64,000 nucleotides of DNA from Klebsormidium nitens (GCA_000708835.1 DF237134.1:92815-156814), one strand, 5' to 3'. Positions 7,293 through 63,741 are shown, counted from the first letter of the stretch. Program-made: numbers and translations. The notes: generated from the letters alone by a model not told the origin.

Positions 7293-10200
7293 TCACTCGC
7301 CTTCCTCGTCTTCGCCTTCATCCTCGTCGCCCTGTAAACAATTTCGACAAAAGAGTCAATGACAACCTCATGAATACAAAAGAGAAAAATGGGGGTAAAA
7401 GCGGGTTAACAGTCGCTTGTGGGGGCGATCTTCCGTATCCAGGCAGGTCAGAAGCGCAGGCCGTTCACTTTGCGTTACATGAATCATTGACGAGGCTCTG
7501 CGTCGGCCGTAAAGGCTGGGGCAAAGACCCTGCCAGCATAGAACCTCAACCTCAGGTTATTGACCGTGTTGTGACTTAAAACTCGATGTTGGCGGGTCAA
7601 TCAATCCCACACTGGCTTCTTCGTTCCCCAAGATCCAAATCCTAAGTGGAAATTCAATAAATCCAGAGGCTCACAGCAAACGCGACCTTCAGAGCCCAAC
7701 AAGACACTGAGCATTGAGGCCCAATGAGTCGCCGCAATATCTGATAGACACCCGGTCAATCAACCCAAACCCTGCTTCATGCAGCGGCGAGAAGTGATGC
7801 GCTCACCCCCTCTTCGTTCCCCTCCTCGTCGCCCTCGCCCTCCTCGCCGCCCTCCTGAAATGGACAGACCATTTTTTTAGCGCTGCTCGGTCTACTTCAC
7901 AGCAGCCATGATTTGCAGTCGAATCACTGCGGTGCCGTCCTGCTCTGCCGAGACTGTTCAAACGAAATCAAACTAAGTCAAACAACCACAACAGACACAC
8001 ACTCTATACATAGTCAGTCCGCCACCCAAAACGACGGTCTCACAATCTGGTCCAGATGCGGCTTGCGCCGGAGATGGGAAGTGTCCGCTCAAAAACGGCG
8101 CACGACTGGACCACGAACGCGAGAAAATATGATATTTGAGCAGGGGGCCAGCTGTGACGACCGCAGATCATCTTCTTAGCTGCAAATCGTCTTCCGCATG
8201 CGCAAGTCCCAGGCCGTAAAAGTTGGGCCGATATGAAACGAAGAACAGGTAAAAGAGCAACTCCGCCCGCTTGCTTTCGAAGTCGCTTCGCTCTCGCTAC
8301 CACTTCACTGGATCAAGCGTTCGGTTGGCACAAAAGTCACCTGTCTCGGCCCTTATTCTTGGCCCCTGATGTGCAGAAGATGGTGAGGCAACTGGTTGGC
8401 CGACGTCGCACCAGATCGACCTAATCACAGAGATCCTTGCATATCTGCTTTCGTTCCGCCTTGGCACTTTCTAGTCCCTTATGGAAACCAACAAGCAACA
8501 ATACTGACCACTCCCCCTTCCAGAAACTCACCTCTTCTTCCCCTTCCTCTCCCTCTTCCTCTGCCTCTTCCGCCCCTTCTTCTTCCTCCTCCCCTTCTCC
8601 CCCCTCCTCTTCTTCCTCCTCTTCGCCCTCTTCCTCCTCCCCCCCTTCTTCTTCCTCGCCCTCTTCTCCTTCCTCCCCCTCTTCCTCTTCTTCCTCCTCT
8701 AGTTCCTCCAGCTCTTCTTCTAGATCCTCCTCGCCCTCGTCCTCCTCGTCATCGTCCTCGTCGTATTGCTGCAGAGGGATCCCTTCGCATGAGTCTATGC
8801 ATTTTTAGTCTTCTACAATGTCGCTTCAGCATTAATCCTTTACCACTGCAGGACAGCTGTTTGCGACACCCTTTCGAGGACGTCGGGGGCAATCCGAACA
8901 GGTGCAAGATCCCCGAGTCATCTTCCGAAACGTGAGGTGACCTGTGGGGCAGTTTGCATCTCGGGGAGGTCGAGCATTCAATTCTATTCTTTTCTGTATC
9001 TTATTATTTGTCGCACATCAAGGTGTGCGTAACAACTCCTCGCCGTAGGCACCAATTACACAGCGATCAAGCGAAGAGAAGCTATCAAAGCCGACGTTCT
9101 GGACCGACTTCCTGAGCGACATTCTGAGCTGCTGATTCACTTAGGCAAGCTGCCTTTCGGTTACGAGCACGGAGTATAGCCGTACAAAAGTAGACGGAGA
9201 AGGATCCCGGCTGCAACCCTAGACCAGAACCTTGAGTCAGGTTAGCCGAGATCTTGCAGAGAAGCCCACGACGCCGTCTGACGAGTACCCTCTGACGGAT
9301 TCCCGTTCTAAGGAACTTCGAAAAGTTTCTATCCGTCTCGCTTCTGTGAAATACCCTCAAGAAGGCCAGCCTTCGAAGGTTCGAACGGTCGAAGCCTGTG
9401 TTAGCCGTCCCCGCAGGTGCAAATTCGATAGAGGATCCGAAACCGCGGCCCGTCATGGCCCACAGCCCTTCAGCAGAACAAACAATCGCAGAATTCATGC
9501 GCGGATCAGCACTCACGTCGCTGTTGAAGTACTTGAGCGGGTTCGGCCACAACTCGTCCTTTATTACCTCGGCAATCTGCAGGGGCGCAACGAGTGACGT
9601 CATCACTGATATCCGGACGCTCGGCGCGCACCAACACCAGCTGGCACCGAGTGCAAGGGGAAAACCGGAAGCCCGAGCCTCGCCGTCCTTGACTTTTCGT
9701 ACTTCGTTACAGTGGTCCTCTGACGCTAGTGATGTTCTGCTACGCTCAAAAGATGGCACTTTCATCCAAACGGCACCGCTTTTGGCCACAGAATACTTGG
9801 GTTGCATTCGGGAGCGCGACCATAGAAGCCGGAGTTCGAATCTGACGCGCTCTTTAGAACTGCTTGAGAAACCGGGACCGGATTTCTTTTAGAAGAGGGG
9901 TCGCGATTTCGATTGGCGCTGGCCGACAAGCCAGCAACACCGCCAAAACGTGACGACGAATCCCCACCGAGAAAGGCTAGGTTTTGAGAGACACAGTCCG
10001 GTCAAGTCAGCGGTAATTGTCGGAGTCGACTTGCAGTCTTGCACGGTAACTATGGGCTTGTTACTACGCCCCTTGGACAATGTCCTTGGATATAAATTCA
10101 GGCAAGCAGAAAAGCGCTACAAGCTCTCGAAAGCAGTGCGCGGCGCTCACTTGGTCCTGGTCTTGGGAGGGATCGTACGTGGCGTCGCTGTCGTTGAACC

Positions 10201-39562: not shown

Positions 39563-40427
39563 GTATCATTTTGTCCCTGCACTTTGAAATCTAACCAATA
39601 GAGCTCTCTGCTGCATCTACTCTCATCACGAGCTCTCGCAGTCGACACATTGATGATACAGGACCCTCACAGCGACACGGCTTACCTGGCCATTGCAATG
39701 GTTTGCGAAGTGTCGCTGCGCTGTGCCAATGAGCGTGCATAGAAGCTAATAATTGTGCACGCTACGTACATATGTGAAGTTTTCCATGTTGTGCCATCCA
39801 TGTGGGCGACCAAATCTCAACATTAATATGAGGGAGCTTGTACAATCGCGTGTATGGGTTATTATGCATGGTATAGGTATAATCTGATTCCTGGCCTAGA
39901 CTACTTGCAATGCTCAGTGCATGCAGTGGTACACCAAGCTGCCGCTTTCTGTGTGAGACCATGCGACTTTTTGCTATAGATGCATAGCTGGCATCCGCGA
40001 GTCGGAGGCCACGCGGCCGGCCCCCCACCTATTCAATTCAACAAGCGGCCCCGCGATGTATCCAGTATCCTGATTCAGTGCTTTTCCTTAAAAAAGCTCC
40101 GCAAAGCTGGTCCAATTAACGCATATATGCTTGCGTGATGGTTGTCAAACTCAAACTCTCAATGACAAGCGGTAGGCTTTCTAATAGGTGACAGTATATT
40201 GAAGTCTCAATGCTCATGAGAATTGCAAACATACACGAAAACGTGCGTTGAGACGGCGTGCAGACGAGGTTCTCATATGTTCTCATGCATCGGATTAAAC
40301 ATCTAACTAAGGTTAACTTCAACCGTTAAAGTTGATGAGCGTTTACGTGAAGTGACCAACCAGGCTTGGCGAAGTTTCAGAGCTCAGGCACAAAATAGAG
40401 AAACTGCAACGGAAGAAACAAAAGGCT

Positions 40428-40546
40428 GGATTCGTCACGAGGACTTCCCGGAAGGTCACCCATTCCAGTACTATTCTCGCCCACAGGCGTTTAGCTTCGG
40501 AGGTCTGATGGGATCCGGCGCAATAACCTAGGTATGAACGAACCAC
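40428..40546 (-). rRNA. 5S: 5S rRNA gene (single copy in window), 119 nt
   Basis: Reverse complement GTGGTTCGTTCATACC...GCCGGATCCCATCAGACCTCCGAAGCTAAACG...GGGCGAGAATAGTACTGGAATGGGTGACCTTCCGGGAAGTCCTCGTGACGAATCC matches the plant/algal 5S pattern. The 5' and 3' ends pair, a T-run follows 4 nt downstream, and a TATAAT lies ~25-30 nt upstream. Confidence 0.97.
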
Positions 40547-54600: not shown

Positions 54601-57600
54601 CTTTCATTCTGCAAAGTCCGAGTCTAGCCCTGAGCAATGCTTTGGTGCGTTACTGCCTTCTGCACTCACCTTGAGCTTGCGCTTCAGCCAGATTTCGCTC
54701 TGACAACCAAGGCCCTGTTTTTCTGCAGGGCCTTGCAACGCAGAAGGCGCTCGCACGAGCACGCGCCATGCTCAGGGGCTGGACAGGGCCCGCAGCAGCC
54801 TCCCCTCAGCCGCCAACAGACACCGCCCCTGTTCCTCCACCACTCGACACGCAGACTGTCGCCGCAAACACCTGCCCGGGGATCCCTCCCGACCACGAAA
54901 CCCGGGGCCAGGAAGAGAGGACCACAGAGGTGGGAAAGTACTCGGAACAGTCCCACGAGTTGGTGGGATCTGCGGGCCACGTGGCAGAAGAGGAGCTTCG
55001 GTTCTCGTGCGGGGGGCCGGAGACGCAGCTTGCGTTGGCAAGGGGGCGTGCTGTGGTGAGAAAGTGGGCCCCCGGACTTGTGTCTCCAGTGTCTTGCAAG
55101 GGGGCGGGGGCGGAGAGGAACGAAGAGGGGGTTGAGGGGGCGAGCGAAGACGTGGCTGCGAGACAGGAGCAGAACGAAGAGGGAGGGGGGGCTCCTGAGG
55201 AAACAAGTAGGAGGCAGGGGGACGGAAGCGGTGATCCTGCTGCTAACGAGAGCGAGACGCGATTGAGGGAGGAAGGCGAAAGGGGGGATCAAAAGGTGGG
55301 ACATCCGGCAGGGAAGAGGGCGCAACTAGAGGCGCGAGAGGATCCTGGGCCGGCAAGGGATGAGCTGGGGAAAGCCGAAGAAACTGAGCAGCAGAGCGGT
55401 TTGGCAAAAGGGAGACCGGTCGAGACACTGGAGTGTCTGGATGGTGCGCACGAGAAAGGGGTTTCTAGTGCTGTAGAGGAAGTGTTGAACCAAGCAAGAG
55501 AGGAAGCAGCAGAAGGGTCGGCAGATTGCGTCTCGCGGGAAGCGAAGGGCTCAGCAGTGGCAGACCGAAAGGTTGACCTTGCAGAAATACCAAACGCGGA
55601 AGGTTCTGAGTCGGTCGTCCGACAGGACATGCCGGACGCGTCAGAGGTTGTTCGGGGCGACGAAATGCACGATCCGCAGCCGCTTCCTGCCGTGGGCGGA
55701 GACCTGCCGGATGGTCACGTGGCGCTGACGTCAGCATCGCGGGCGGAGCCTCCGCAACAGGGGGGGTCAATTGTAGGGAACGGTCAGACGGAGGAGGCGG
55801 AGGCGAAGCTTTTGGAGGCAGAGGGGGAAAGGGGGGATCCGCAGACGGCAGGGACCCCCCCAGATGGCCTGGGATTTACGACCCCGCCTGCGATACTCGG
55901 CCCGTTCTGGGCTCCTGAGGGGGGGTTTCCCCTGGGCAGCACGGCGCCCCCCAGTTCGCGGAAGCGGCCCTGCCCGTCGTGGCGGGTGTCTGAAACGCAG
56001 AACCCGGACGAGACCCCCGTCCGCAACGGCGCGGCAGGCGAACGCGTGGAATCGGCGGGTTCGCCGGAGGAGGATGTTGCGGGTTCGCGAGAAGGGGGGA
56101 CCGCAGGTAACGAGGGGTTTGCGCAATTAGGCGCGGGGGTTGTTGATGGTTTGCGGACGGGATCAGGATCGGGTTTAGAGGGTTTGGCGGCATCGAACGC
56201 TGACGGAGTAGGGGCGGGTGTTGCTGCGGAAGAGGGTGTAATCGGGCGTCCAAAAGAAGCAACGAAGCCGTACGAAAGCAAAGCGGCGGCGGACAAGAAT
56301 GGCTGGCGTCAGAAGGTGACGGAAGCGCGGGCGCCGCCAGAGGGTATGAGGGGTCCCGGACAAACGGCACCGAAACGTGGGGAGGGCTGTCCGGAACCTT
56401 TGGGGGATCCCCCAGCGGGCAAGGTGCAGAGAAACGAGGGGGTGGCCGGGCCCCAGCCAGGGACAAATGAAAAGGCGCCACGTGGCAGTCCGAAAGGCGC
56501 CGGTTGGACGCAGTGTCTGGAATACTTTCAGCAGCAGGTGGAGATGGGGAGGGTGTGTACGCTGCCGGCGTACTCTCCGGGGGGGTGCGATCCGGGGGCA
56601 AAAACGGGGGGTGTCGCGGGGTGGGCAGAAAGTGAGCCTAGCCCTGGGAAGCATGCACAAAAGAGAAAGGCAAAAGTGACAGCTGGCGGGGCCAAAAAGA
56701 GTGGAGAGGGTTTGGTAACGGGGGGCCAGAAGAGCCGGCCAGAGCCTGGAAGGGTTGAGGAAAAGGAGTGCTTTCAAGGGGTGGGCTGCGGATTGGGAGG
56801 AAGATATGAGGAGACGGGAAGCATGACGGTTGATGATGACGCTGCAGGGGGCTGGCGGGAGGCAGTGCGGGCTCAAGAAAAGCGTGCGGCAGAGGGTGTT
56901 TCTGCCTTAGAGAAGAAAGAGACCAGGGCGGACGGGTGCAGAGAAGAAAAGGCGGGGGTAAAACAAGCACCGTCGAGTCCCCCCCAGCGCGAAGCCTCCT
57001 CTCCGGGGGGGCACGGCGTCCAGCGGAGCTGCAGCCAGAGCGGGACCCCCTGGCCCGAGATCTGTTCCGTGATCGGCTCAGAAGAGCTGCCGCTGTTCAA
57101 ACCGAAGCCGCGAGTCGTGTACTCTGCCGCGCACAAGCCGGCGGCCGAGGGGGGGTCTGCGCAAGATAAGGAAGAAGGGGGGGGAGGCGGGGAGAGAAAG
57201 TTTGTGGAGGTGGAGACGCAAGAGTCGGTGGGCGTGCTGATCTGGCAGCGGAGGACCGGTGTGAAAAGGGCGCGCACGTTCGTGATCGATTCGACGTCAG
57301 AAGGGCGGGAAGCGGAGCGGGGAGGCATTCACAACGCGGGAGAAGAGGCTGTCCCAGGGGAAGGTGCACCTTGTGGGAATGGAGCGAGGAAGAGGTTGAG
57401 GAAGATTGGAGGTGGAGTGCTGGATGATATCGAGGAGGAGGCCACGTGGCACCGTGTGGAGCCGGCCACGTGGCACGAGGTCGAAGAGCGGAAAGGTGGA
57501 GGAGGGACGAAAGGAATCGAGGCGATTGCGAGCCGGTGGCTTGGAGGCTGGACGCCTGCGGTAGGTCAATTCACAATTTCTTGCAGGCCTAAAAAAAACC

Positions 57601-58028
57601 TTTTCCGAAATCTGCTAGATGTGAGAACCGTCTTCTCGCTCGGTGAAAAACAAATCAGTGTAAAACCGTGAGCTTGGCTGGGGCACTTTGCACGGGCTAC
57701 TAAAGTGGGGTGAAAAAGCTCTGTATGTGCGCAAGTGGAAGCTCAAAGCTCCTCTCGAAGTTTCTCGTCCGTGAGAATTGAAAACTGGTGCACTGACAGT
57801 AGCTTGACGGGTACAATTGCGGTTCGGTCAGCGCCATACAGCTGTGGAGTGCGACTCTAGTCAGGTCCGCAACGATTAAGCCGCGCTTTAACTATCCGGC
57901 AGATTTCGTTCGTGGGGAATGACATGGTTGACATGCAAGCAGGACTCGACCGAGAACTATACGACACTGAGCAGTCTGTACGTTACTTGAAATCTTCGAC
58001 TCTTTACTCGAGCCCGAGGCGGTTCTGA
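51695..58028 (+). CDS. Very large low-complexity (E/G/A/P-rich) protein of unknown function, built from two ~2.4-2.8 kb exons
   Basis: Stop-free frames 51695-54229 and 54729-57671. A phase-0 donor GTG|GTGAGG at 54103 matches the phase-0 acceptor ctgcag|GGC at 54729. A donor CCTGCG|GTAGGT lies at 57560, with a tentative last exon 57903..58028. The start is not identified and no domain is recognised. Confidence 0.6.
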
Positions 58029-58246
58029 AATTTACTTGTGTCGCCGAAAGTTGACACTTGAGGCTGGTGCTTCGCTGGTGCGCACATCAAAAAGTCTACT
58101 TCCATCAACCCGGCATGCACGCCCTCTCAGGCTTTGCGCTTCGTGCATGTCTTACGGCGAAAAGCGGTGCGGTTTTCGCCCACAAAGATACTTGAAGAAG
58201 TTCGCAACGTTTATAAGTTGACTTGCACCAAAAAGTGGCTCCAGTG

Positions 58247-58459
58247 GGGGCTGTAGCTTAGTGGTAGAGTGCCAACTCGGGGTGCTCCCCCAGAGTTTCT
58301 CACCGTTTGAACGTGAATGTGAACGTCAGCACGATCAGCAGCAACCTTCTCAACGTCGGGGACAAGAACAGTCAGAGACGTAATAGTCCGATAAGAATCT
58401 GAAAGACCTCTGGGGCGCACCCCGAGTGAGAGACGCGGGTTCGATTCCCGCCAGCTCCA
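58247..58459 (+). ncRNA. tRNA-Ala-like RNA with the anticodon arm replaced by a long helix and a ~100-nt loop (tmRNA-like architecture)
   Basis: Acceptor stem GGGGCTG/CAGCTCC with G3:U70 and discriminator A. D-arm/A-box TAGCTTAGTGGTAGAGT; T-arm/B-box GCGGG-TTCGATT-CCCGC. The intervening helix is ACTCGGGGTGC/GCACCCCGAGT plus CCCCAGAG/CTCTGGGG. TATAA lies at 58212 and TTTT at 58467-58470. Confidence 0.8.
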
Positions 58460-59074
58460 AAGCGACTTTTGCAACTCTGCATAAAGTACAGCATCTCTAC
58501 GACGGGTTGAGAGCAGATTTATGTGGACCAAGGATGTCCAGGCTAGCAGCTGAATAGGGGATGCTAGTCAGTACCTGCTGTGCTCTGACGCTTCGGCCGA
58601 TGCTCTTCTTTCCAAATCATTACCTTAAATTTGAGGCAACCTCCTCGTGTTCTGTTCTCCAACTAAAGCGCCTTCCTCGCCACTTGAGGCGCTTGGCATC
58701 GCAGCCTCAGGTTTGAGGAGCTGACGTTGAGATCATCTTGGTTGTGATCGTCAATACAGAAGGTTTCTTCTTCCTCGTTTTGCCTGATAATTGCCAAGCA
58801 AAGTGCTCTCAGACCACAGACCCCATCGCGGCTCTTTCACGCCCAGAGGAAACAAGCTGGCGACTCCGCAAAGGATCCGCCCTGCTTTTCCTAAACGATA
58901 CTCTCAACTGCTCTAGCCTCGGCAACCTTTCTTTGTCCCCTTCGCTTGTTCGAGAGGAACCCTCCTGTTCTGAGAAACTGCGCGAGTTTCCATAGCAGCG
59001 CAAGTTTGACTCTCAATCTTATCAGGTTGTCAACAGATACTATGGAGAGAGCCAGAGTCTGCAGATTGACGCAG

Positions 59075-62000
59075 AAACACGAGTCACCCCGTGGAACGCT
59101 TGACGTACTTCCGCCTCACCACTTTGCGCAAGAATCTCAATCTCTTCCCGCAGGCGGCTCCCGCTGTCAAACACGTGGCGGACCTCCCTTCAACCCCGCC
59201 CCAGACGCCCCCTCGGGAGTCTCCACCGACCGCAACGCAACAGAGCGCCCAGCACGAGAAAAGCGGAAAACTAGACCGGGACGAACCCCCAGAAGCCCGC
59301 CAGCCGGCGTGGAAGAGGGACGGGTTCGTCGAGTCGCTCTCGCAGCCGAGCCAAGCCGACTTTCCCCCTTGCGCTTCTGACGAGATTCCCGGGGATAAGC
59401 CCTCGAGTGCGGAACTCAAAAGCGCTGCGGCGCCGTCAAACCCTCCGCGACCCTCTGATCCCGCAAAACCTTCAAACCCTGCAAACCCTGCAAACCCTGC
59501 CAAAACCCTAAACCCGGAGAGGCCTGCCGAGGCTGGCCCCAAGGCTCCCGAGCTGGTGCTTGAGGAGTCCCCGGTTGGAGAGTCTCCAGAAATGGAGCCG
59601 GTCAAGGCGGATGAGGTTAGGCGGAGTCCCCGGAAGAAAGGGCAGGAGGGGCGACCGGGGGAAGCAATGGCAGGCGGTTGGAGGAACCGGGAAAAGCACG
59701 TGGGCGGTCGGAAGGAGGCGGGGGGCGGTCGGAGGGAAACTCCGGGCGGTCGAAAAGACATCGTGGGCGGTCGGAAAGAGTTCGCGGGCGGTCGGAAGGA
59801 TGTTGTGGGCGGTTCAAGAGAGCCTCCGGGCATCCCAGAAGTGGACAAAAGGTTTCGGGGGGAAGGCGCCGGGGCTGGAAGGGATTCTGGTGGCGGTCGG
59901 GAGAAGGTTTCGAACATCTGGGCGAATCCTTCTCGACGCCCCCTGAGCCAGGCGCAAAAGGGCCGCGTCACTTTTGTACGTCCGCAGAGGCACGACTTCG
60001 TCCGGAACTCCTCGCAGGCGGTCGCTGACGTGGCACGGAGGATGCGGGAGGTCACCCAAAGAGCCGCTCGGGAAAACAGTGCTTCGGCGAAGACTCTTCG
60101 AGAGAAGCGTGCTCGAGGAAAAGAGGCGTCGGCTTCGGACGGTCGCCGGACGCGAAGCGGGCGTCCGAACAAGCGGCCAATGGACAGCCAGTTTCTGGTG
60201 TATGGGGAGGGGCGAGCAGCATCGAGCCGTTGCGAGAAACAGACTGGGTCTCGAGAGACAGGCGCTGAGAAGAATGGCTTCAGCGAGTTGCCTTTCGAGG
60301 GGACAGGGCAAACTGAGGGCAGTGATAGTGACGACTTTGGGGAGGAACAAGCAGGGGAAGCAGGGGATCTGCGGGGAGGAGAGAGGGGTGACGCAGGGGT
60401 GACGTCAGGGGGGCTGAAGTGGCCGGAAGACCGGAAGCGGAAGCGGCTGCCGGGGTCCCAGGAGAGTCGGGAGAAGCGCCCGAAAGGAGGGGATGCCGAA
60501 GGAAAGGAAGGCAGGGAGAAGGGCCACGTGGCAGCAGGGAAAACGACCAGGTATGGTCACAGGAATCGGGAGAAAGCGGCAGGGAAAAGAAGCGCGGGAA
60601 AAGGAAAGGGAAAAGCAAGTGGGTTTTCTGGCGGGGTTGGAAAAATGTCCGACGATGGTGCAGCGAAAACGGAGGAAGGAGTCCCGGAAAGTGAAGGGTT
60701 TGGTCTGAGAAGGAGGATGCGGCGCAAGTGTTTTTCCAAGTATAAACGCGCACAGAAAGTAACGCGGAGGGAGAGTGAGAAGCCTAGCGAGAAGGCGCGG
60801 GGAGGAGTCACGACGCGTCATGGTGCCGCGCTGACCAAGGGGCTGAGGCTCAGGAAAGGGTCGAAGGTTTTGAGGTCCAATGCGGAGGGGACACGTGGCA
60901 AGTTGAAAAAGCGAGCAACCGCTGGTAGTAAGGCAGCGCCGGAAGGTCCAACTGAAGCAGAACGACCGGGAAGAAGGACGGCCGTCGATACCGAGGCTGC
61001 TGAGGCATCAGCGGAAGGGTCGGATGACGTCAGAGGAAAGTCGGATGACGTCAGCGGGGATGAAGGTAAAACAGCCAGTCCGAAACGAGCCCCCGGGAGA
61101 CGGGTCAGCTTCCAGGCGGTGTCTCCGGCCTCCCCCGCCCGTCGGTCCTCTGCGTTTGGGACCCAGCAGGCCGCCGCGGCGATCTTCGAGATGGCGGGGG
61201 CTGACGTCGTGGATGACGTCAGCGGATCCCCGGCTGCGAAGGGCGGGGGCGCGGCGACGCCGAGGCGGAGTCCTAGGGGGAAGAAGGTGGCGGGAAAGCC
61301 GGTGAGCGGGGAAAAGGATTGGTCCGGCGGAGTCCGCCGGAAGGACGACGAGGAGGTGCGAGAGGGAGTGAGGAAACGAGGTGACGCTGAGCCTGACGTC
61401 ATCGACCTCCGGGGAAATGGTGGGCGGGAAAAGAAGGCGGGGAGACGGGGGCCGATCCTGTCGAGTTGTCGTCAGAACCCGACGAGCAGCGAGCGGGGAG
61501 CCAAGAAGAGGAAGCTGTCGGACATCGGGACCGGCGGGGATGCGTCCGAGGGGTGCCACATGGCAAAGAGTGCCCGGTCCCAGAGCCCGGCTGCCAGGAA
61601 AGGAAAGCGGGTTAAGTCGGACATCGAGCTTTCAGAGGAAGACGGCGAGCCGGTACCGAGCGGGCCGCTTTTCGCGGGCTGCCGGTTCCTGCTGACCGGG
61701 CTTGAGACGGGGCAGAAAGAGAAGCTCACCGCGCTTCTTACGCAGCATGGCGGGCAGATTTTTGCTGACATCCCGGAGCCTCCTAGCAGGGGGGCAAATC
61801 TGGGGGCGGATCATACCCCCAGCCCGCTGAAGCCGAGGCGGCGCCATGCCCCGGGGCAGCCGGAGGCGACCATCGTGATTGCGGGCAGGCCTGTGCGGAC
61901 GCCCAAATTCTTGTACGGGTGCGCGGTTGGTTCGTGGCCGGTCCGAAGCGCGTGGGTGTCCGCTTGCGTGAAAGCGGGAACGCTGGTTTCGCGAGCGAAG

Positions 62001-63741
62001 TTCGAAAGCCCCCGAACGGAAACGTCCGCGAAGAATGGCACTGAAAAGTTTGTTGAGGAAGGCAAGGCGAGCGGCGGGGGAAAGAAGAGGGGGAGTGCGG
62101 GCGTTTCCGGGCGGAACCAAGCGGAAGAGCGGAACGGAAAGGAACTAGAGCAAGGCGTCCTCGCGGGCTTGCATTTGCACCTGCACGGGAGCGCGAGGTT
62201 CAAGAAGACGTGGGCGGATCTGGTGCGGCACGCAGGGGGCCACGTGTGCCGGTCGCTGGAGCACGATTGGGCGCACGCGGTGCTGCTGGAACCAGGAGTC
62301 GACGCGCCGCCGGATCTGAAGCGCGCGGCCAGGCGGGCGAAAGTTTCGATCAAGGTAAGGCGATGGAATTTGAATGTCCTTGTCGTTGAGCAGATTAGGT
62401 CAGTGTACTGTCGAAGGGCGCGGCGAACTGTGCCAAAATCCCTATCAAGGTGAGATTGTGACATGATATGTCCGTTTTTGAAGACCGGTCGACGAGCTGT
62501 GCACTCGTATCGGGGCAGTCAGGCAGGGAGTGCTTTTGTCTACGTGCAATCTGGTTGAGTCGGTGGGACCGACTTGCTGGCTAGCAAGATTCACTATCGT
62601 CACGTGTCTCTGAGACGCGAAACCTGGATCTTCGTTTTAGAGAGTTCGACGAGTATACAATTCCTCAGTCCGTTCTTCAAACGTTTTTGCCTGTTCCAAC
62701 CTCCCACTTTCCTCGCACTTGCTCGGTAAAATTGAGGTGATATCGGGCGATAAGCCAGGGTTGGTAAGCCGCTACGAATAAGTCAGAGCTAGCCCATCCA
62801 TTTGGAAGTTTGCAGCCGTCCGTTGACGTAGTTCGAAGCACAAGCCGTCGGTGCGGCCCGCTCTCAAAGCGCATGCAGCGTCAAGCATCAATAACTACAT
62901 CCAATGTTTACAAGATGGTCACTTCTAGAGTTTGCTAAAGCTCGTTCCGTCCACTTTGCAGACCCTGGACTGGGCCGTCGACGCTCTCCTGTCGGGCAGC
63001 CGCCCGGCCGACTTTCCAAACCCGCCAAACCCCCAAACTCTCGAGCAAGCCCTCTCACCCTCGGGAGCCGCAAGGCGCGACCAAGACAGCCCCAAGCATC
63101 CCCCAAAGAGGCGAAAGTCGAGCCTTGCTTCTAGCGACGAACTTTTACGAAAAGGCAAGGACCCGGAAGAGGCCGGCGAGCCAGATCACGCTCCCCGAAA
63201 TGTCCGAGAGGAAACTCCGCCGGAGGGGGGAGCTGCCTGGGAGGGTTTGGGCCTGCGAGAACCCCCCCCACTGCCGCCAGACGCTCTTACGGCGCCCGGG
63301 GAGTCGGACGTCCGCCCCGCAAAGCGGACGTACTTTTCGGTGGTGACGAGCGCCGGCGAGCGGTACCGGATCGGTGACGCGGCAGAGACTCAAGCTGACG
63401 GAAGCGCGAGCGCGCGCGTCGTCCAGCTGATGTCACTGTGGGAGTTGCCCGGGAATGGCGGGGAGGGGTGTATGCGGGCCACGTGTCGGCTTTTCATGCG
63501 CCCCCAGGAGACTGAGTTTCCAATTGGAGGCATGAGTGGTTTGGGGGCTAACCAAGGGTTAGCGGAAAGTGGTTTGCAGGAGGTGTATCTGTCCAGCGTG
63601 GTGCAAGAATTGGATGTGTCGGAGCTTAGGAGAAAGGTACATGTGGCAAGGAGCACAGGAGGTGCTGGTCCGAGTGCTGGTTTCCTATGTAGATTCTTCT
63701 ACGATGCGGAGCGGGAGATCTTGCAAAAGCTCAAAGGGTGA
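59075..63741 (+). CDS. Large disordered, basic protein with C-terminal tandem BRCT domains followed by a BAH domain
   Basis: Exon ~59075..62354 (donor AAG|GTAAGG) joins 62962..63741 in phase. BRCT1: LFAGCRFLLTGL..LLTQHGGQI..RTPKFLYGCAVG..VRSAWVSAC. BRCT2: VLAGLHLHLHG..LVRHAGGHV..TLDWAVDALLSG. BAH: YRIGDAAE..ARVVQLMSLWE..CRLFMRPQET..EVYLS..FLCRFFYD. Upstream exon and start are unresolved. Confidence 0.85.
59703..59828 (+). repeat. 21-bp coding tandem repeat x6 (GGR[KR][ED]xx heptapeptide)
   Basis: GGCGGTCG(G/A)A.. recurs every 21 nt, encoding GGRKEAG GGRRETP GGRKDIV GGRKEFA GGRKDVV GGSREPP. Confidence 0.9.

Follow-up and report, generated by a model that had tools for sequence, protein, structure and literature searches.

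A tRNA-bodied gene, probably for a non-coding RNA under selection, in an intron of a BRCT-domain gene of Klebsormidium nitens

Results

Location of the RNA gene in the host intron

We found a complete tRNA-Ala body at positions 58247-58459 (plus strand) of the window, by which we mean the whole stretch of 64 kb (64,000 nucleotides) of Klebsormidium nitens DNA that was analysed. The anticodon arm of this RNA gene is replaced by ~157-159 nt (Table 1). All of the features listed for it in the original prediction were found in place, including the shell of alanine tRNA identity that encloses the whole element.

The element lies within a protein-coding gene. In RNA contigs of two runs from independent studies (X5 and X7) the match to the window ends at 59153 and resumes at 57530-57559. 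The 57560-59154 junction in these contigs defines a GT..AG intron. Both exons are joined in frame, which makes the RNA gene intronic and sense-oriented, with 686 nt between it and the 5' splice site and 694 nt between it and the 3' splice site. It had been taken for a stand-alone nuclear gene, a description that has to be given up since it sits in a spliced intron. The host product has 2030 amino acids, with a BRCT_2 Pfam match in exon 2, and the two-exon order of this BRCT-domain gene is retained in three related loci. Neither the intronic position nor the apparent membership in a family (see below) was part of the original prediction. Elsewhere, the window holds a 5S rRNA gene and two separate repeat arrays, one of them within exon 2 of the BRCT-domain gene (Table 1).

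Table 1. Coordinates of the RNA gene, its parts, its host gene and other features of the 64-kb window.
Feature	Position	Strand	Basis or remark
Short-period repeat array	8510-8779		separate from the repeats at 59678-59842
5S rRNA gene	40427-40545	-	Rfam, 89.5 bits
Host gene exons	54768-57560 and 59154-62453	+	joined frame kept, one 2030-codon ORF
Host intron, GT..AG, 1593 nt	57561-59153	+	RNA contigs joining 57559/57560 to 59153/59154
TATA-like element, TATAA	58212-58216 (-35)	+	read directly
5' tRNA shell: acceptor 5' strand, U8, A9, D arm, G26	58247-58271	+	Rfam tRNA alignment
Acceptor stem, 7 bp	58247-58253 with 58452-58458	+	G3:T70 (G3:U70 in RNA)
A box	58254-58264	+	TRGCNNAGTGG, position 8, exact consensus match
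D arm: 4-bp stem, 7-nt loop AGTGGTA including G18 and G19	58256-58270	+
Long interrupted helix, 5' strand	58272-58302	+	MFE and centroid folds
Helix 1, 11 bp	58275-58285 with 58417-58427	+	folds
2x1 internal loop between helices 1 and 2: TC bulge / C58416		+	folds
Helix 2, 8 bp	58288-58295 with 58408-58415	+	folds
Helix 3, imperfect, distal to helix 2 of the insert		+	closes ~97-nt loop, folds
Interior, ~97 nt, fast-evolving, small hairpins; motif ACAAGA-N-CAGTC kept	58303-58399	+
Long helix, 3' strand, GAG top	58400-58430	+	folds
3' tRNA shell: variable loop, T arm, acceptor 3' strand with U70, A73	58431-58459	+	Rfam alignment
T arm: GCGGG/CCCGC stem, loop TTCGATT	58435-58451	+
B box	58438-58448	+	GGTTCGANTCC, position 192, exact consensus match
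Discriminator A73	58459	+	CCA not encoded
T4 run (TTTT), candidate Pol III terminator	58467-58470 (+8)	+	read directly
21-nt tandem repeats (GGGCGGTCGGAAGGA-like units)	59678-59842	+	within exon 2 of the BRCT-domain gene

Anatomy of the RNA gene

The tRNA character of the shell was borne out by the Rfam tRNA model (RF00005), which aligned to the gene from end to end with a score of 38.7 bits (E 1.3e-4 over the 64-kb window). The cut-off of this model is 29 bits, and 157 nt were skipped in the alignment at the place of the anticodon arm. The bases of the tRNA body that make tertiary contacts are all there: U8, A14, G18, G19, G15 with C48, and T54-A58. The variable loop of the 3' shell has 4 nt (AGAC).

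The insert folds into a long interrupted helix, of ~21-25 bp in the folds of K. nitens and of the orthologous gene described below. At its top the 5' strand reads CCA and the folds have C-A and A-G mismatches. The folding z-score of the K. nitens insert is -4.2 (against 200 shuffles). In both the score of the tRNA model and the fold of the insert, this anatomy is beyond chance expectation. Since a helix and a domain of ~100 nt stand in place of the anticodon arm, the RNA cannot decode.

Other known RNA classes were searched for in the insert. We found no snoRNA boxes (C/D or H/ACA) in it, the C box being absent even with relaxed matching, no hairpin presenting an NGC anticodon, and no Rfam match at E-values up to 10, snoRNA and group II introns included. 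A nuclear copy of a plastid trnA(UGC) with its group II intron was rejected because there is no group II match and the anticodon loop is absent.

A syntenic ortholog and its pattern of conservation

The same intron of a relative contains an ortholog of 198 nt. The exon 1 product of the host gene has a 71%-identical protein on the Logan contig L001 and the exon 2 product a 69%-identical one on L016, from the same sample. The splice sites of the host intron are conserved in these two contigs. Both end within the T arm of the ortholog, which was assembled from them by a 23-nt overlap plus synteny. The breaks inside the T arm fit a repetition of the T-arm piece in the genome of the relative.

Conservation is very uneven along the gene. 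Between the ortholog and K. nitens, the 5' shell is 96% identical (24/25 bases) and the 3' shell (58431-58459, compared with the end of L001 plus L016:1-30) is 100% identical. The 3' helix strand is 91% identical (58408-58430, 21/23) and the 5' helix strand 67%. The interior falls to 45%, with a 15-nt indel, and the rest of the intron stands at ~47% identity. The sole change in the 5' shell of the ortholog is one-sided: U13 is replaced by C, and the U13-G22 pair of the D stem becomes C:G. The helix underwent changes of both kinds. In helix 2, G58414->A is accompanied by C58289->T, i.e., a C:G pair becomes U:A, and in helix 1, G58281->T makes a U-C mismatch. This covariation is based on one diverged ortholog, with one compensatory pair versus one new mismatch. 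Folded alone, the insert of the ortholog forms a helix of ~21 bp (6+4+6+5) with other distal sequence and a z-score of -4.9. The structure is thus conserved in a relative, as far as the shell (96-100%), the closure by a long helix and the compensatory change in helix 2 are concerned.

G3:U70 is intact, as are the bases of the tertiary contacts and the 3' strand of the acceptor, which points to selection on a fold at the level of the RNA. Judged by the pattern of selection, the tRNA fold of the RNA would matter, as would the basal part of the helix that takes the place of the anticodon arm, and the interior would not. Part of the conservation of the shell could be due to promoter or TFIIIC constraint, or to exchange with other copies. 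The contrast between the conserved shell and helix and the drifting interior makes the arm, not the cargo, the target for experiments.

The original prediction had also set the element apart from SINEs, and the conserved syntenic ortholog agrees with this; it is the reason to reject a decayed SINE-like repeat. A tRNA-derived SINE or retroposed pseudogene was rejected on structure as well, because the shell closes the element, and because the tail, the CCA and a flanking direct repeat are all missing. The single copy in the window and the selection on the syntenic ortholog also oppose it.

A second stretch of the intron is conserved. In the ~270 nt that precede the RNA gene (57951-58220, plus strand) identity to the ortholog is 60-83% per 30 nt, compared with 47% in the rest of the intron. 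Two hairpins in this region (58113-58149 and 58157-58181) are small and perfectly paired, and two patches of it (57983-58029 and 58134-58160) are also kept in a diverged second copy of the locus in the relative X12. The upstream half of the intron gave no credible Rfam match, and the fold of the region is no better than that of shuffles (z 0.15). This conserved stretch may be an upstream regulatory region.

Pol III signals and expression

The features of a type-2 Pol III gene are all present: the A box, the B box, a T run downstream and, as expected in plants, a TATA-like element upstream. The original prediction had pointed to such signals, and they are conserved in the syntenic ortholog. Its TATAA is at -34 (L001:13438-13442), in a flank that is only ~58% identical, and its trailer has a T5 at +11 and then a T4, and is otherwise diverged. 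Around the TATA and T-run signals the intron flanks of the two genes are otherwise ~50% identical. Conserved extragenic signals of this kind favour an independent Pol III unit.

Evidence from RNA was sought in sequencing runs. Sampled words of the gene occurred in mRNA-type runs (58%, 37%, 32% and 10%). RNA contigs from two studies cover 58329-58590 and 58400-58635, one per run and at ~2x depth. They extend 130-175 nt beyond the T4 run, with the insert still joined to the 3' shell. These contigs are unstranded and of low depth and may be pre-mRNA or traces of DNA. The remainder of the host intron is silent, with no RNA contigs, and the host exon has depths of 49 and 4.9. None of the RNA contigs at the locus has the ends predicted for the RNA, 58247 and 58459 plus CCA. 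Libraries of the mRNA type recover tRNA-like RNAs poorly. The RNA evidence for the gene is weak.

The intronic position raises the possibility that the same RNA is cut from the intron, or its lariat, of the host Pol II pre-mRNA by RNase P and RNase Z, in the manner of mascRNA. The host gene is indeed expressed, its intron is spliced out, the element occupies the middle of that intron in sense orientation, and the RNA contigs run on beyond the T4 run. Yet such an origin leaves the exact A and B boxes unexplained, as well as the conservation of the TATA spacing and of a T run after the 3' end in flanks so diverged. It also fits poorly with the lack of RNA contigs from the rest of the intron, and many tRNA genes are intronic and yet independent of their hosts. 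We consider this origin unlikely, if still a serious contender, and retain transcription as a Pol III unit of its own as the favoured reading.

The RNA runs X5 and X7 also contain abundant contigs of 617 and 716 nt (depth 211 and 321). They carry a paralogous tRNA 3' half, which resembles 58427-58461 with three differences and is followed by >570 nt missing from the 64-kb window. This suggests another family member inside a highly expressed longer transcript.

Ordinary tRNA and tmRNA identities

Tools for tRNA detection do not recognise the gene for what it seems to be. With default settings ARAGORN made no call, and when introns were allowed it returned a tRNA-Val(cac) with a 136-nt intron. 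This call would suit a tRNA gene with an unusually long intron that is spliced to a decoding tRNA, and a 2026 review of photosynthetic tRNA repertoires gives ~34% of the K. nitens tRNA genes as intron-bearing (PMC13578239). However, the anticodon loop of the valine model (CGCACCC) has neither U33 nor a purine at position 37, and a valine anticodon is at odds with G3:U70. A better match to the alanine acceptor is obtained by removing 58284-58415 by hand, which leaves a 7-nt loop, GU-CGC-AC, with U33 and A37. For this Ala-CGC model the anticodon stem would have to be 10 bp long, two mismatches included, and splicing would have to occur at 33/34; the G58281->T change of the ortholog would break its putative stem. 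Excision at the canonical 37/38 position would leave the anticodon GGG on a stem, CCAAC/GTGAG, in which two of the pairs are mismatched. A bulge-helix-bulge is absent, as the sole internal loop is of 2x1 nt, and the cuts would fall inside the continuous 11-bp helix. The text of the same review mentions only canonical introns for K. nitens and describes streptophyte algae as having mostly retained canonical 37/38 introns alone (PMC13578239).

No single excision of the insert gave a canonical anticodon arm, and the three intron models (Val-CAC, 37/38 and 33/34 Ala-CGC) were rejected since each violates tRNA rules. The view that this is not an ordinary intron-containing tRNA is thus upheld, the 37/38 excision being mispaired and the intron model of ARAGORN forced. 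We regard splicing to a decoding tRNA as very improbable. The gene does resemble intron-containing pre-tRNAs and tricRNAs in that additional, helix-forming sequence interrupts the anticodon region. It differs from these, and from archaeal and red-algal genes with bulge-helix-bulge introns, in that it has no anticodon loop, no bulge-helix-bulge and no canonical splice model.

The original prediction compared the plan of the gene to that of tmRNA, and a eukaryotic tmRNA-like RNA for trans-translation has some points on its side. The gene has a tRNA-like domain of the tmRNA kind, with an acceptor stem with G3:U70 and a T arm formed from both ends, and a long helix leaves this tRNA-like part towards an internal domain. 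Its last 28 nt match the 3' end of E. coli ssrA at 26 of the 28 bases, a likeness that the original prediction had pointed out, and the tmRNA model of Rfam (RF00023) gave an E-value of 3e-9 in a search of 411 nt. But the likeness to ssrA goes no further than the T arm and the acceptor strand, parts that would be common to all tRNA-Ala-like bodies. The RF00023 score of 27 bits falls short of the cut-off (47), and the alignment takes in the acceptor and T arm alone and skips 176 nt. ARAGORN in tmRNA mode found none, relaxed thresholds (-ps80) included.

The rest of the structure also departs from tmRNA. tmRNAs have no D stem, and their reduced D loop contacts SmpB. The K. nitens gene has a full D stem, and together the extended helix and the D arm would leave no room for an SmpB-like mimic. 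The interior, where a tag would be expected under a tmRNA plan, is the least conserved part, and no tag or frame is common to K. nitens and the ortholog. The gene further differs from tmRNA in being nuclear and intronic, in having the Pol III signals of eukaryotes and in not encoding CCA. No pseudoknots were predicted for it, by folding tools that cannot predict pseudoknots. Homology to tmRNA, or a shared mechanism, was rejected because of the RF00023 score below the cut-off, the negative ARAGORN search, the D stem and the lack of a conserved frame. The tmRNA plan therefore falls, and trans-translation by this RNA is barely conceivable.

Relatives, paralogs and distribution

Closer relatives contain the gene as well. 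In X10, a single contig spans 58226-58471 with five differences. In X12, the 647 nt upstream of the gene have at least 36 substitutions and 6 indels, and 198 nt of the gene have three changes among those listed (58286, 58336 and 58384), all of them at positions predicted to be unpaired; this contig has 54 differences in total, of which 15 are unlisted and hence unplaceable. X12 also has a second, diverged copy of the locus (564 nt), in which 58247-58285 and 58409-58444 are kept and the interior (~106 nt) is unalignable. This copy, at a depth of 25 versus 40, may stem from a paralog, from a divergent haplotype or from a second strain.

Many other contigs of X12 share only the two halves of the gene. 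The depth of the 3' half reaches 1023, versus ~40 for single-copy sequence. The paralogous contigs have 58247-58281/58285 and 58424/58428-58459 in common with the gene and diverge beyond these limits. They fit a gene family.

The distribution of the gene seems narrow. The tRNA-like element is absent (E up to 1) from two more distant syntenic loci of a metagenome that have the same two exons (L002 and L003), hence the gene is lineage-restricted. It is young, and may be dispensable. A search of the 64-kb window for further copies of the insert, and for antisense targets, gave only chance matches of at most 12 nt. In a metagenome scan, a 19-mer from the 5' junction had no match, and a 21-mer from the 3' junction matched 12 loci, none of which ends in the acceptor strand of the family. 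These loci include one tmRNA; the others are tRNA arrays of phages or bacteria, or unrelated sequence. The contigs matched by the 21-mer, L005, L008, L009 and L011 among them, are unrelated to the alga, and several are dense phage-like tRNA arrays. At one locus (L009:1866-2250, minus strand) we found a GOLLD RNA (211 bits) among tRNA genes. We found no description of RNAs such as the one studied here in the literature on Klebsormidium. The gene seems to be confined to Klebsormidium, as one member of an undescribed family of tRNA-derived RNAs.

Multiple copies also raise the question of whether the element is a neutral or selfish pseudo-tRNA-Ala. Its anticodon arm would have been broken by an insertion, it would have spread by duplication, and its RNA would have no function. 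The shell would then stay intact because true tRNA-Ala genes exchange sequence with it, or because the A and B boxes and TFIIIC binding are selected, for instance for a role as a chromatin boundary. The abundance of gene halves in X12, the neutral rate at which the interior drifts, the lack of the gene at the two distant syntenic loci and the failure to see an abundant transcript in the RNA contigs would all be expected of such an element. Besides the A and B boxes, conservation takes in the variable loop, G3:U70, the 3' strand of the acceptor and 11 bp of the helix base, none of which is needed by TFIIIC. True tRNAs have no such helix base, and the closure by a long helix is kept despite differing distal sequences. 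Exchange would have required separate conversion tracts of 25-30 nt on both sides of the insert, which seems implausible. Poly(A), a simple-repeat tail and an encoded CCA are also missing, and the window has no other copy. We judge a functionless pseudo-tRNA to be rather improbable, and an RNA with a function remains our preferred explanation.

Discussion

A tRNA body reused for another RNA

The gene is probably that of a tRNA-bodied non-coding RNA, under selection and made by Pol III. The most satisfactory account, which we place just on the probable side, is a functional tRNA-derived non-coding RNA whose body would be a module for promotion, processing and stability, with the conserved arm as the effector. 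Of the three hypotheses in the original prediction, the tRNA scaffold that carries or releases an RNA is the closest to the conservation pattern; the one of a trans-translation RNA is not supported.

The anatomy, the pattern of selection, the conservation of the Pol III signals and the site in an intron are established here; Pol III transcription, end maturation, alanylation and the role of the helix are our inferences. The two ends of the RNA fold into a tRNA body of alanine identity, and the A and B boxes in this body make up its internal Pol III promoter. RNase P, RNase Z, CCA addition, exportin-t and AlaRS recognise the acceptor/T-arm half of tRNAs, and AlaRS also recognises G3:U70. The transcript would be a substrate of RNase P, RNase Z and CCA addition, with AlaRS and exportin-t as possible further readers. 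Splicing of this RNA into a tRNA is improbable. The functional parts would be the tRNA body and the base of the helix, which may be an arm for protein binding or the arm of a small-RNA precursor. The interior would be a spacer that evolves freely.

A more specific version of this account is possible, and we hold it only tentatively. Klebsormidium would have a new class of nuclear RNAs, natural tRNA scaffolds that RNase P and RNase Z mature and that are CCA-tailed, chargeable with alanine and non-decoding. The body would provide stability and trafficking, by export or by import into organelles, and the long arm would be the effector, either as a protein-binding element or as a Dicer-type precursor of small RNA. 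Plant tRNA-Ala is imported into organelles.

Should the account hold, it would reveal an aminoacylatable, non-decoding RNA in a eukaryote near the origin of land plants. To our knowledge, alanine is the sole identity that needs no anticodon. It would also mean that a class of genes is missed or mislabelled by tRNA finders and by annotation.

Comparison with known systems

Several known RNAs use a tRNA-like fold for purposes other than decoding. In the tRNA-miRNA transcripts (TMERs) of MHV68, in the mascRNA of MALAT1 and in tRNA-derived SINEs, this fold is a promoter, a signal for RNase P and RNase Z, or both, and the extra RNA sits 3' or 5' of the tRNA-like unit. The Klebsormidium gene is similar to them in having a product that is not a tRNA and an attached hairpin that could be the precursor of a small RNA. 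It is different in that its tRNA body encloses the extra RNA. SINEs differ further, as the Klebsormidium gene has no 3' tail and its orthologous copy is under selection. What is new here is the site in an intron of a protein-coding gene, the map of selection provided by the ortholog and the absence from the distant syntenic loci.

The closest parallel is an artificial one. Ponchon and Dardel reportedly engineered, in 2007, a tRNA scaffold in which an RNA of interest takes the place of the anticodon stem-loop. The tRNA body of such a scaffold gives correct processing and stability. The two designs have in common an intact body of acceptor, D and T arms and an anticodon stem that is extended into a helix with a foreign RNA domain. 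By its topology, the Klebsormidium RNA would work most like this engineered scaffold and, more loosely, like TMERs and mascRNA. The difference is that the Klebsormidium gene is natural and conserved, and that its body would have the role of a scaffold by analogy. Provided that the RNA is produced and processed as proposed, an entire tRNA body has been put to new use in evolution as a cassette for promotion, processing and stability, and the gene would be nature's counterpart to the tRNA scaffold designed by engineers.
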